Of a stretch of DNA of 64,000 nucleotides, positions 33,459-41,387 are shown in pieces. Position numbers and translations under genes: made by a program. A model generated the notes under the pieces. It had not been told where the DNA came from, made no database searches, and was given only the letters and a program-made list of their open reading frames with translations. Positions within the stretch are counted from its first letter, which is position 1; every line of letters begins with the position of its first letter. Where the stretch lies: the sequence record MW349128.1; one strand, written 5' to 3'.

Positions 33459-36400
33459 TTAAATCATATCTTTTACTTTACGTTTTAATTCTATTAAAGC
33501 TTTATTTGTGAATAGCATCATATAAATATCAACTGTCATACGAGAGACAATACTTAATGGAGAGAATACAGCTTCGATTTCCTCATCAGGTCTATATTCC
33601 GCATAAGGAGATTCATTTGGAGGAGTTACATCAGCAACTACAGTTTTACAAGCTCCATAGAAACTAATTTTATCTCCAACACTCATATCATCTTCATACT
33701 CAGTGAAGATTTCAATAAGAACTCCATCAACTTTTTCTCCTTTAATTTTCTCTGTATTAATTTTATCAACTGCAGCGATATCTACATCAATACCAGGTAA
33801 AGTTTCTTTATTATTTTTAATTCCAGATTTATACTCTTTATATTTATCATTTGATTTTTTAATGTAATTATTAACTAATTTAGCTAAACTATCAGTCATA
33901 TTTTCAATATCATCATTATAATAAATATTAATCTTTTTAATATTACCTGTATATTTACTTCTAACAGCTCGGTTAGCTATATCTTGAATATCTTGTTCAA
34001 ATTCACTACCAATTTTATCTAATAAAGAACCAATACCTTCTTCATCGAATGAAGTTTCAAATATCATTAAAGGATCTCCTGTACGTACTTTCTGACCTTC
34101 TTTAACTATATATTGAATATTTGTGTTTGATGGAATATTTACTGTTTTCTTCATAGTAACTTTAGTAGACATTGCTTCAGACATACTACTAGAAATAATA
34201 GAACTATCTTCATAAGTCATTTATATTAGCTATTATATTTTTATAATAGATTAGACTATATCAAATTCATTAGTATTAATGAATAATCATATTTAGTCGT
34301 TGAACTCTATAAATGTAGAGATGCTGATTAATTTAATATTTCTCAGCAATTAATAATTTTTTGACATTACATTACTATAATGAAAGGCATTTATAATACC
34401 ATATGAGCTAGCTACAGATACTTTAGATAATTTACCTGAAGTGAATTGAATATCATTATTTTTACCAGATCCAGCAAAGAAATTATTATTTTTAGCAAGT
34501 ATTTGACCTTTATTAAAAGTGTCATCTACATTAAATTGTGGATCAAGTTTATTAGATTGATAAAAACCTGAGTTAGAGTTTTTGGCTAATTTTTCAGATA
34601 TATCAACAATATCTTTTTCACCATTGATATATTCCACTGTCATTAAACCAGTTTTCTCGTTAATTTTTAATACTTTACCATCTTGTTTAGCTTTAAAAGC
34701 AAATGTATCTGATAATTGATAAGCTAAAGATTTATCAACACCAGATCCAACTAATGGTTTACTATTAGTTTTTGTTGGAATTACGTGCTTGGCTTGAGTC
34801 AGATTATCTTAATACACTTTGTTTATTGTGTATTAGTTCTTAATGAACTTCTTTAAAATAAATTAAAGCTGAGACTATATCAAATACCATTTAGGTATAA
34901 TCTTATTTAGTCGTTGAACAATTTGATTGATGCTGATTAATTTAATTATTATTTTCTCAGCAATTAAAGATTTTTCTATTATTATATTACTATAATAAAG
35001 GGCATTCATATACCAGTCATTCCTATACGTGGACTATCTGCATGTTTTGAGCTGAATGGGTTGAGCAATTCTAATGGAGTGTATAGAGATGTATCACTCG
35101 CATCTTTCTTACCGCCATCTGTATAACCTCTAGTGGATTTAATTAGTGAATCATATGAAAGCTGTCTGACCACTCCTCAAATATCTTCAATAATGGGCGT
35201 TAACCATTACCAGTTCTCTTATGAACTTCTTTAGGATTTCCCTAAAAGTTGAGACTATATCAAATACCATCAATTAATGGTATAGTTCTTTTTCCACTCA
35301 CTTGAGTGTACTCTACTTCATCAAATATATCTTTGAAATAATTTTTATTAAAATCAGTGTAATAATCTTTTTCATTTAATATTTTTTTATTTCTTATAAT
35401 GAGTATATTTGATTTTTCGATAGTCGTTGAACTATTTAAAATATCATGAAAGTTATCTAAAAAGAAATTGATATTATTTTTATTTATACGAATTAAAGTT
35501 AAATTATTTTTTAAACAAAAGTCATTTTTTATGTGGTCTTTTAGTGCATTTTCTTTGACATTTTCTAATTTTTGATATTTAGAATTATTTCTATACTTAA
35601 AATGTTGAACCCCATCAAATTCCAAAAGTATATTTTCGTTATTTAATGTAAATAAGAAATCAAATCTAAATCTATTAGTATTTTTAGAATAATAAAAATC
35701 ATTAAAAGACTTTTCTCTTTCATAATTTATATTATTTTCATCAAAGAATTTTCTAATTGATATTTCACCATTAGACTTAATAGCACAAATAGGACATCTG
35801 TGCCCTGCACTTACAAAACTGTTTGCACGCATCTCAAATACTTTACCACACTTATGATGTAATATTTTCATTTTAGTGAATAGATTAGTATATGTTTGTC
35901 CATCAATAAGAGAGTATTCATTTTTGCCTAAATATTCTATTTCTTTTTTAAAACTTTCAATTGTTCTTTTTTTTATATTTAGAACATTTAGGACACTTCT
36001 TATAATATAACAAATTATTTGGAGTGGATTTAAATGTTTCATTGCATAGTGTATGTCTAAAATTTATTTTTATTTTACTCCCTTTATATCTTTCTAAAGG
36101 TATAAACAAATCATAGATATTCTCATTTTTTAAACTATAAATAAAATCTTCATGATTTTTATTTATACCGCCTACACATTTGACACATTTATTTTTTCCT
36201 TCAAACATTTGTTTAGGTTTTCGTTTAAATTTAAAACCACAATTATGTTTTAAATTTATTTCAGTATCATAGTCTACGTATTCTTCATAAAAAATTTCGT
36301 ATTCTTTAAATTTCTCATAATTATCATTTACTTTCTTTTTAAAACTTTCTTTATCAATTTTTCTCACATTATCACCCCAGATTATAATAAAATTATGTTA

Positions 36401-39833: not shown

Positions 39834-41387
39834 TTGGTTAATATGATTTATGATAAAAAAGATTTATCTGAGAAAGAAGTATCAACTTTATTAAGTATAA
39901 AAAAAGAAGATATTACTCTTGATAAACTTAAAGAATTATTTGCATTTAGACAAAATACACAACCAATGTTTAACCCTAGCGATAGATTTAAACTTAAAAA
40001 AGATTTAGTTTATAATAGTAAAGATGAGAGAACAACAGTTGGAAGATATATATTTAATAAATTTATATTAGACAATAAAATAGGACCTATTATAGGATAT
40101 ATGAATAAAGATATGGGAGGATCAGGTGTAGGAAATCTACAATCTGAACTATCTAGTTTATTACTTAATGATGTTATTACAACTAAAGATATGAATATGT
40201 ATATTGATAAACTTCAATGGCTCGGTTTCTCCATAGCAGGATTTATTAATTCTAGCTTAACAACTACAATGATGGTTGCTCCCGATAAAGTTAAACAAAA
40301 GAAAGAAGAATTACTAGAGAAATATGGTAAAGCATTAAATACTCCTGGTGAAGAATTGAATGCTATTAGTGCTATTGAAAAAGAATTAATTAAGTTAAGT
40401 AAGGAAGAATTAGAAGGTTTAGCAGATCTTGATATTTATGATAGTGGATCAAGAGGTAGTTTTGGAAATAACTTCAAGTTAACAGCTCTTATTCGTGGAG
40501 CAAATAAAAACTTTGCTGATCCTAGTAAAATACGTATTGCTAAGAGTTCTTTAGCTGATGGAATTGATCCAGAAGAATTATATATGTTTGGTGATATTAT
40601 GACAGCTGGTTCAGCTGGACGTGCTTTAGGTATATGAATGCCCTTTATTATAGTAATATAATAATAGAAAAATTATTAATTGCTGAGAAGATATAAACTT
40701 AATCAGCATCAATCAGAATGATTGTTCAACGACTAAATATAATTAAACTCATAAAGAGTTTTTGATATAGTCTGATCTATATTAAATTAATATAGATTAA
40801 CATAAATGACTCAAGAAGGTGGGTAAATTAGATGCTCACAATAAATTCTATTAATTGCTAGAATGTTAAAACTAACTAGCATCAACTTTATTAAGTTGTT
40901 CAACGACTAAATATAGAAATGATTAAATTCATAAGATATAGTCTAATCTATAATAAAATATAGATAATAAAATGATCAAGCTAAAAAACTTATGTCCGCT
41001 TTCCAAACAACTGTATTAGATAAACAAGGTTCTGATTGTAGAACAAAACATACATTAAAATTAACATTAACTAAAGATAATGCGAGTCTTTTATTATATA
41101 GATATTTTGAAGATACTTCAGGAAGAAAAGGTCAATTAATACTATTAACGCCTGAAAATGTGGATGAACACATGGGTAAAGTATTGAACTTCAGAAGTCC
41201 TATGTATTGTGCAAGTGAAGATATTTGTAGTAAATGTGCAGGAGAACTCCCTTACAAACTAGGTATAGAAAATATTGGACTATTGGTTAACCAAGTGGCT
41301 CAAGCAATTGTAACAAGCTCCATGAAGTCTTTCCATGATATGACAATTAAACAAAATGAAATAGATATCGAAGATTATATTTATTAA
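39834..41387 (+). CDS. rpoC: RNA polymerase beta' C-terminal-like subunit, probably virion RNAP; three exons, 408 aa
   Basis: Exons 39834-40631, 40809-40824 and 40975-41387 give GRALG|TQEGG(Y)|QAKKL (bridge helix; cf. [11 protein letters not shown]); SGSRGS, DC, FRSPMYC..ICSKCAG. Confidence 0.92.
40632..40808 (+). mobile_element. ORF-less group I mini-intron D (177 nt)
   Basis: GGT|ATATGAATGCC; TTGCTGAG..AATCAGCA; GTTCAACGACTA; TGATATAGTCT; P9 ATCTATAT/ATATAGAT; terminal G40808. Confidence 0.9.
40825..40974 (+). mobile_element. ORF-less group I mini-intron E (150 nt)
   Basis: P1 GTGGGT/GCTCAC; P3 TTCTAT/ATAGAA; P4 TGCTAG/CTAGCA; P6 CAAC/GTTG; P7 GACTA/TAGTC; P8 ATGA/TCAT; P9; terminal G40974; no P2. 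Confidence 0.88.

Follow-up and report, generated by a model that had tools for sequence, protein, structure and literature searches.

The genes for the beta and beta' subunits of the virion RNA polymerase (vRNAP) of Staphylococcus phage Machias, an AR9-like jumbo phage of 274 kb, are broken up by five insertions, four of which are short and contain no open reading frame (ORF). The question raised by this locus is what these insertions are, and how intact polymerase subunits could be made from genes that are so interrupted. The DNA analysed here, hereafter called the window, is a stretch of 64,000 nucleotides (nt) from sequence record MW349128.1, and its positions 33400-41500 are 100% identical to Staphylococcus phage Machias (MW349128.1). 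As judged from their sequence and predicted structure, the ORF-less insertions A, B, D and E make up, together with the ORF-bearing insertions C, F and G, one miniaturised family of genuine group I introns. This assignment is based on their boundaries, their architecture, covariation, the ORFs that are restored by their removal, and presence/absence polymorphism among related phages. That the Machias introns are group I introns and are also spliced appears highly probable.

Boundaries and architecture of the introns

To set the boundaries (Table 1), translations of the exons were compared with the intact genes of phage SA1, and empty sites were sought in relatives. Phage PB50 (~97% overall identity to Machias) is without B, C and D, and its flanks at the sites of B and D are 98-100% identical, while A, C, D and E are missing from phages MarsHill, Madawaska and SA1. 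These empty sites are seamless, with neither target-site duplications nor terminal inverted repeats. In the beta gene, C is inserted between DSNKV and G, B between RIGMTG and TQAKH, and A between VASSYG and TYEDSS. Excision of all three yields a single open beta ORF of 1421 codons, compared with 1418 amino acids (aa) in the intact SA1 homologue, and the C-terminal part of the spliced product matches the Pfam family RNA_pol_Rpb2_6. In the beta' gene, excision of D and E gives ...AGRALG-TQEGG-YQAKKLMSAFQ (hyphens mark the two junctions), in the same register as the intron-less SA1 gene and with one residue different (SA1 reads QAKQLM). The 16-nt micro-exon that separates D from E serves as the 3' exon (P10) for D and as the 5' exon (P1) for E. 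In a phmmer search against PDB chains, the spliced stretch around this micro-exon aligns to bacterial beta', in a region that we take to be the bridge helix. The predicted junction peptides of the spliced RNAP proteins include ...RALGTQEGGYQAK and ALGTQEGGYQAK.

Table 1. Exons, introns, intron ORFs and helices of the interrupted genes (positions in the window)
Feature	Position	Strand	Remarks
vRNAP beta (C-terminal gene, CPT_Machias_170) exon 1	36579..39517	-	ends ...STPDSNK-GT
Intron C, 1401 nt	35178..36578	-	long P5 extension, two ORFs; boundaries from intron-less SA1, MarsHill, Madawaska
Intron C ORF, 136 aa	35957-36367		
Intron C ORF, 260 aa	35260-36042		annotated homing endonuclease
beta exon 2	35012..35177	-	
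Intron B, 212 nt	34800..35011	-	ORF-less; PB50 empty site, 98.5% identity
beta exon 3	34398..34799	-	
Intron A, 180 nt	34218..34397	-	ORF-less; empty site in MarsHill, SA1, Madawaska
beta exon 4	33459..34217	-	
vRNAP beta'-mid (CPT_Machias_171) exon 1	39843..40631	+	ends ...AGRALG (GGT)
Intron D, 177 nt	40632..40808	+	ORF-less; PB50 empty site, flanks 100% identical
Intron D P1 (GGU/GCC)	40629-31 with 40640-42		
Intron D P2	40643-40667		GUAA loop
Intron D P3	40671-76 with 40739-44		
Intron D P4	40681-86 with 40703-08		
Intron D P5	40688-40700		
Intron D P6	40710-24		
Intron D P7	40731-35 with 40768-72		
Intron D P8	40747-59		
Intron D P9	40775-97		
Intron D terminal G	40808		
Micro-exon ACTCAAGAAGGTGGGT, 16 nt	40809..40824	+	between D and E; T-Q-E-G-G and first base of Tyr
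Intron E, 150 nt	40825..40974	+	ORF-less, no P2; empty site in Madawaska, MarsHill, SA1
Intron E P1 (GUGGGU/GCUCAC)	40819-24 with 40834-39		
Intron E guide, P10 part (GAU)	40831-33		
Intron E P3	40846-51 with 40913-18		
Intron E P4	40856-61 with 40876-81		
Intron E P5	40866-75		3 base pairs
Intron E P6	40883-98		
Intron E P7	40905-09 with 40939-43		
Intron E P8	40919-32		4 base pairs
Intron E P9	40946-65		
Intron E terminal G	40974		
beta' exon 3	40975..41387	+	
Intron F, 773 nt, family-B DNA polymerase gene	5298..6070	+	no P2; guide GCUCAA
HNH/NUMOD4 endonuclease ORF in intron F P8 loop	5433-6017		Pfam HNH_3 and NUMOD4
Intron G, 1087 nt, same DNA polymerase gene	6361..7447	+	like C: P5 extension; 253-aa ORF

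All seven introns have a U before the 5' splice site and a G as their last nucleotide. P1 pairs GGU with GCC in A, B, C and D, GUGGGU with GCUCAC in E, UUGGGU with GCUCAA in F and ACGGCU with GGUCGU in G, and, of the 35 aligned family members that have letters at the U.G position of the 5' splice site, 26 show this pair. P10, as read from the sequence, comprises 3 base pairs (bp) in E (AUC/GAU), 4/5 in B and D, and 7/8 in A. The helices follow the canonical order of P1, P2 (not in E), P3, P4, P5, P6, J6/7, P7, P3', P8, J8/7, P7' and P9, and the P3/P7 pseudoknot is present within a canonical core, with P3 formed by TTCTAT/ATAGAA in E, AATCTT/AAGATT in B, AATTAT/ATAATT in D and AATTAT/ATGATT in A. 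The elements GUUCAACGACUA and GAUAUAGUCU agree with GGUUCAaAGACUA and AGAUAUAGUCu, the consensus of J6/7-P7 and J8/7 in the Rfam group I family RF00028. Helix names were assigned to the mini-introns from the Rfam alignment of a 206-nt scorer, which reads ...GGUUCAaAGACUA ... AGAUAUAGUCu, plus AAUUGCGGg and AAuCCGCAG. Within the mini family, J7/3 is 3 nt long (AAU in A, B, D and E), P5 has 3 bp and P6 has 4-6 bp. L2 is GUAA or GUGA in A-D, and in intron B, where the P2 loop is GUAA, helices P1-P9 are accompanied by additional 3' hairpins. Neither a Pfam-recognised ORF nor space for one was found in A, B, D and E, ORFs being confined to C, F and G, so that these four lack the internal endonuclease ORF that would mark an intron mobilised by a homing endonuclease. 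One of the two ORFs in C shows a weak Pfam match to a treble-clef zinc finger.

The analysis started from a sequence-only reading that had proposed most of this picture for A, B, D and E. Its sizes and coordinates agree exactly with those obtained from SA1 translation and from the empty sites of relatives, and its claim that removal restores RNAP motifs is confirmed by the open 1421-codon beta frame and by beta' in SA1 register. The helices that it named are all present, its four P3 pairings are correct, and A, B, D and E are, as it had stated, ORF-less, with a P5 reduced to a few base pairs (~3 bp) and, in E, no P2. Its assignment to group I is likewise supported by architecture, namely the U.G pair of P1, a G at the 3' end, helices P3-P9 including the P3/P7 pseudoknot, and a J6/7-P7 and J8/7 that equal the Rfam consensus.

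That introns are present at the Machias RNAP genes is already public; their nature is not. In GenBank, the coding sequence (CDS) of the Machias virion RNAP beta is a join of 4 pieces and that of beta'-mid a join of 2, and both genes carry the remark "exon boundaries predicted based on alignment" to a reference protein (YP_009283093 or YP_009283168). Korn et al. (bioRxiv 10.1101/2020.12.14.422802) report that introns disrupt many genes of these phages, RNAP subunits included, without stating intron type, size or structure. The earlier reading had allowed for prior annotation in related phages, and Machias itself is annotated in this way. The structure of the mini-intron family is, as far as we could find, undescribed. 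A two-piece join has no room for two introns and a micro-exon, which means that the deposited beta' protein must be wrong there; the micro-exon at 40809-40824 (the TQEGG segment) is missing from the GenBank beta' CDS. The depositors of phages PB50, AH12 and LY01 annotate RNAP exons as separate genes or CDSs. Many family members finish in ...AAAUG, and in A (34218-34220) and D (40806-40808) this terminal AUG is in frame with the following exon, so that ORF callers begin a false gene there (e.g. the ORF at 33459-34220).

Covariation and extent of the family

The window holds seven family members, A-G. The 16-mer GTTCAACGACTAAATA, which covers J6/7, P7 and J7/3, occurs in it five times exactly, in A, B, D, E and F. 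Allowing up to 3 mismatches raises the number in the window to 9, versus 1.4 expected, and 0 of 100 shuffles reached this value. The same 16-mer is found in at least 117 IMG/VR stretches, mostly on contigs of 200-400 kb.

A covariance model (CM) was built from D and its orthologue in AH12, with a structure drawn by ourselves. In the window this model recovers B (E = 9e-19, 104.7 bits), A (E = 5e-16, 90.5 bits) and E (E = 1.4e-8, 52.7 bits, with the P2 positions deleted), and it also matches the 5' half of F and both ends (5' and 3') of C. Sister phages and IMG/VR jumbo-phage loci yielded 90 matches to the model, of which 49 are distinct, and these matches, with P7 added as a pseudoknot, constitute the covariation alignment. 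Three MAFFT alignments (A1-A3) were rejected for counting pairs, with P1, P5, P6 and P8 out of register and P3 one column off between the Staphylococcus and the metagenomic copies; because of these errors the CM was used instead.

In the resulting alignment, 93.0% of the cells pair, versus 65.1% after shuffling (0 of 500 shuffles as high) and 33-42% when the partners are slid by 1-3 columns, and the covariation score is 0.553 versus 0.140 shuffled and 0.04-0.09 slid. Both-sided changes occur in 48 of the 52 pairs. By helix, the proportion of paired cells is 94.9% for P3, 99.7% for P4, 93.8% for P6, 98.7% for P7, 94.4% for P8 and 95.5% for P9. P7, which lies outside the model, is nearly invariant and has the compensatory variants GAAUA/UAUUC and GACUG/CAGUC. 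The minimum-free-energy fold of D yields P2, P4, P5, P6, P7, P8 and P9 (z = -4.53), and the fold of E has z = -2.54 in the sense versus -0.97 in the antisense direction.

The family is abundant in sister phages of Machias. The whole AH12 genome (265 kb, 97% identical to Machias) contains 30 CM matches, corresponding to ~28 full-length introns, which are located in vRNAP beta and beta' and, according to the annotation, in or beside gyrB/parE, nrdE, rpoB-like and other genes. A blastn search with D finds 30 places in Machias, 32 in LY01, 20 in PB50 and 8-11 in MarsHill and Madawaska. Among 50,697 phage records searched by blastn with D and E, similarity was found in six Staphylococcus jumbo phages only, and there is consequently no BLAST-level tie to phages Twort or AR9. 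In the IMG/VR loci, a few kb of RNAP genes often hold several introns, one locus (L115) having five CM matches. Other micro-exons occur as well, of 24 nt in the beta genes of AH12 and PB50 and of ~11 nt in another AH12 gene.

The smallest members and comparison with known group I introns

Two architectures can be distinguished in the family. In the first, a P2 with a GUAA or GUGA loop is combined with a P1 of 3-4 bp, which is GGU/GCC in A-D; several AH12 copies, inspected by eye and with provisional boundaries, seem to have GAU/GUC. In the second, E-like architecture there is no P2, and P1 has 6 bp, with the guide GCUCA(C/A) at sites where the intron follows (G/U)UGGGU. The AH12 gyrB intron (L129, within 16074-16250, minus strand) is 144 nt long and lacks both P2 and P8, its P3' being followed by merely CAAAG before J8/7. 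Its removal gives ...YNYFKGLG-EVNADELFETTLNPETR, and Machias and PB50 have the empty gyrB site, where a 351-nt query covers 207 nt, the difference being exactly 144. The LY01 orthologue of E, with 154 nt (L006, 9653-9806), has lost P8, and the P8-less type occurs in 11 IMG/VR loci. P8 is normally counted as a core helix. Automatic splice-site calling from ORF continuity and P1 length proved ambiguous and was replaced by empty-site alleles and motif restoration, and a CM-implied length of 125 nt (L128:35131-35271) was discarded, that match being incomplete at its 3' end.

The introns of phage Twort are self-splicing and of subgroup IA2, orf142-I2 being the crystallised Twort ribozyme; their self-splicing and subgroup were reportedly established by Landthaler and Shub. 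Three tandem Twort introns, the nearest relatives of the mini family that have been characterised, are RF00028-positive, with matches that span 225-287 nt and score 64-101 bits. We take them to be orf142-I1 to I3. The CM derived from D weakly matches one of the three, the middle one (presumably orf142-I2), at E = 0.015. Twort introns and the mini family are both phage mRNA introns that occur in tandem in one gene, and they share P1, P2 with its GUAA loop, a GAAAAA linker, P3 and the UAAU of J3/4, as well as CAACGACUA (J6/7-P7) and GAUAUAGUCUGAACAUAUAUG (J8/7-P7'-P9). Unlike the Twort introns, those of Machias are 150-212 nt long and have no RF00028 score. The matched Twort intron has ~60 nt where the CM has 28 positions (P4-P5), and ~46 nt that replace 16 positions further on, through a deleted J6/7-P7; we interpret these insertions as a full-size P4-P6 and, tentatively, as P7.1/P7.2. 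Two subgroups were considered for the mini family and rejected. For IA2 (the type of Twort and T4 td), the P7.1/P7.2 expected of that subgroup were not found and J7/3 is merely 3 nt (AAU) in A, B, D and E. IC3 would call for a site in a tRNA anticodon loop and for GNRA loops L2 and L9 that dock in P8 and P5, whereas the hosts are mRNAs, L9 departs from GNRA (AAAUU in D, AUAAAA in E), and P2 is missing from E.

The Azoarcus pre-tRNA-Ile intron, of subgroup IC3 and ~205 nt, is the textbook 'unusually small' group I ribozyme; it is G+C-rich, resides in a tRNA anticodon loop, and has L2/L9 tetraloop-receptor contacts and a larger P5/P6a. It has in common with the mini family a compact core with few peripheral elements, a 3-bp guide and an L2 tetraloop (A-D only). 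In contrast, the Machias introns are 25-55 nt shorter (B is longer), are located in mRNA, have ~22% G+C, and have an L9 that is not GNRA, while E is without any tetraloop. The architecture of the Azoarcus intron has been described as simpler (PMC4201826).

The earlier proposal that E may be among the smallest natural group I ribozymes stands in part. The curated GISSD collections for IA3 and IB4 begin at 205 and 203 nt, respectively (PMC6125680), ~50 nt above E, but the AH12 gyrB intron, at 144 nt, is smaller, as are the degenerate group I introns of 56-81 nt in the small-subunit (SSU) rDNA of the fungi Phialophora, Porpidia and Arthonia, one of which, PaSSU, is reported to splice in vitro by the group I pathway (PMC3160393). 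Even shorter RNAs than E have thus gone under the name of group I introns. The fungal introns and the phage family are both naturally miniaturised, but the reduction is of a different kind, since the fungal introns keep only P1, P7 and P10 whereas the phage family keeps the entire P3-P9 core. To our knowledge, 144-150 nt is below anything described with a full P3-P9 core.

The Bacillus jumbo phage AR9 (Lavysh et al. 2016) belongs to the same phage lineage as Machias and has the same genes interrupted. As far as the citation of that work in 10.1101/2020.12.14.422802 goes, splicing of the AR9 RNAP introns is reported to be experimentally supported.

Splicing, spread and rival explanations

Canonical two-step group I splicing appears to be the best-supported reading of these introns, although for both the chemistry and the unaided action of the RNAs we infer rather than observe. 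The pre-mRNA would fold into a two-domain core, consisting of a stunted P4-P5-P6 stack and a P3-P8/P7-P9 domain, joined by the P3/P7 pseudoknot. An external guanosine bound in P7 would attack the phosphate after the U of the P1 U.G pair, the terminal G would next occupy the guanosine site, and the freed 5' exon would then attack the 3' splice site held by P10, leading to ligation of the exons and restoration of the RNAP frames. In beta', D and E would both act on one 16-nt micro-exon, through P10 for D and through P1 for E. In favour of this reading, the host phages are viable and the interrupted genes are essential.

Several observations weigh against it. Splicing of the Machias introns is a prediction from sequence. 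P1 has merely 3 bp in A, B, C and D, the fold z-score of E is modest (-2.5), and E has neither a GNRA loop nor an obvious peripheral tertiary contact. Support for P5, a 3-5-bp hairpin of shifting position, is weak (73.6% of cells paired), and the P8-less AH12 gyrB intron and LY01 orthologue of E cast doubt on the self-sufficiency of all copies. The CM alignment, moreover, is biased toward the model's own structure, and for this reason P3 was retested without any alignment, by comparing the six bases before J3/4 with the six after GACUAAAU. In the 14 distinct strand pairs, 91.7% of positions are paired versus 57.7% with shuffled partners (0 of 5000 as high).

Rfam provides a further point on the same side. 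A cmscan of the whole window at the gathering score detected tRNAs only and no RF00028, and a search of 33900-42200 at E<=10 likewise gave tRNAs only and no group I match. We regard this miss as a failure of sensitivity, concerning a detection rule rather than the definition of a group I intron, since RF00028 does detect canonical relatives that have this core. IMG/VR copies in a longer, G+C-richer context score 51-95 bits while compact copies have no score, and RF00028-positive introns of 193-206 nt occur in viral contigs. RF00028 is known to fail with divergent introns and with those of phages (PMC6125680, PMC11878797), Rfam and GISSD may overlook phage variants (PMC11878797), and in the related phage DC4 Rfam detected no introns (PMC10638138).

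Among the alternatives, we consider it possible, though we lean against it, that the chemistry is derived from group I but that the smallest members (E and its P8-less relatives) need a phage or host protein, such as a maturase-like endonuclease or an RNA chaperone, or else another copy of the intron. E has no P2 and hence no equivalent of the L2 GNRA loop of A-D, its P5 and P8 have only 3 and 4 bp, P7.1/7.2 and P9 extensions are absent, and the LY01 orthologue of E and the AH12 gyrB intron are entirely without P8. A z-score of merely -2.5 for E would fit such dependence, as would the ~30 copies in one genome alongside several intron-encoded endonucleases. However, this explanation names no candidate cofactor, and the near-invariance of the core sequences (J6/7, P7, J8/7, J3/4 and P4) suggests that the RNA itself is under selection. 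Small group I ribozymes engineered from the T4 sunY and Azoarcus introns are moreover active.

It is very improbable that the insertions stay in the RNA and that the RNAP genes are either split further, each piece giving its own polypeptide, or read through by translational bypass. In jumbo phages, beta and beta' are indeed naturally divided over several genes (PMC7598289), the AUG at the end of A and D is in frame with the exon that follows, and several depositors annotate the fragments as separate CDSs. Yet the 16-nt micro-exon could not be expressed alone, the downstream exons have no ribosome-binding sites, the breaks fall inside the presumed bridge helix and other invariant motifs, the genes are uninterrupted in close relatives, and the conserved, covarying ribozyme core would be left unexplained. 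Scarcely credible is the idea of AT-rich repeats or DNA transposons akin to miniature inverted-repeat transposable elements, with chance hairpins and no structured RNA: the insertions are multi-copy, ORF-less and polymorphic in presence in a genome of ~25% G+C where hairpins are common, but they have neither target-site duplications nor terminal inverted repeats, leave seamless empty sites, always lie in sense orientation to the interrupted ORF, and display a strand-specific fold signal and compensatory changes in nine helices relative to shuffled and slid controls.

The sites of insertion track the guide. P2-bearing copies follow GGT (Gly), and several AH12 copies, judged by eye, follow GAT (Asp), whereas P2-less copies are inserted after (G/T)TGGGT or GTGAGT; A, B and D are all inserted between GGT and ACT. 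The junctions considered were 34397/34398, 35011/35012, 36578/36579, 40631/40632, 40824/40825 and 5297/5298, in addition to the AH12 copies. Near-identical guides in different genes at matching short sites are the pattern expected of reverse splicing, and trans-acting endonucleases, or else reverse splicing into short sites that match the guide, probably account for the spread of the ORF-less copies. Support for spread by reverse splicing is circumstantial only, anywhere (PMC3984707). These phages also encode a reverse transcriptase (10.1101/2020.12.14.422802). A bolder proposal, which taken as a whole we regard as unlikely, is that the family represents a new minimal self-sufficient natural group I architecture (144-180 nt, with a 3-bp P5, an optional P2, a dispensable P8 and ~30 copies per genome), possibly spreading at the RNA level by reverse splicing at guide matches of 3-6 nt (after GGU, GAU or UGGGU), perhaps with the aid of the reverse transcriptase.

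The longer introns of the window belong to the same family. Excision of F and G from the DNA polymerase gene results in one open ORF with ...DIEVDGS... and ...KPDICTAWNLDFDF. AH12 holds an ORF-less copy at the site of F (L131:13408-13570), which is 154 nt long by analogy with F and from the best in-frame candidate, and 147 nt as implied by the CM; the boundaries of F and of this counterpart were set by ORF restoration and by analogy. The two form a natural pair with and without an ORF. Positions 36436-36531 of intron C, in its P5 extension, and a similar stretch of G at ~6400-6480 are ~88% identical to sequences in several Staphylococcus epidermidis phages of 86-93 kb, a resemblance which suggests an exchange of intron modules between unrelated staphylococcal phages.

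Two tRNA loci lie close to the beta' gene. A tRNA-like gene at 41937-42039 on the plus strand (Rfam tRNA, 54.7 bits; CAU anticodon) has a 34-nt insertion just 3' of the anticodon, and is neither called by ARAGORN nor annotated in GenBank. The tRNA at 41434-41505, also on the plus strand, has an abnormal anticodon loop and is listed as 'tRNA-???, anticodon (tt)' by ARAGORN and as a pseudo tRNA-Asn in GenBank.

If E and its 144-nt relatives splice protein-free, no natural ribozyme with a complete group I core would be smaller, since they lie ~50-60 nt below the Azoarcus intron and below the shortest members of GISSD IA3 and IB4. They would then set a new lower bound for the peripheral structure that such a core needs. 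Natural variants with and without P2 or P8 at the same host site represent a ready-made deletion series. The invisibility of the family to Rfam implies that intron-rich jumbo-phage genomes are mis-annotated and their genes fragmented. With ~30 copies per genome at guide-matched sites, these phages could also be a test bed for the as yet unproven spread of group I introns by reverse splicing.

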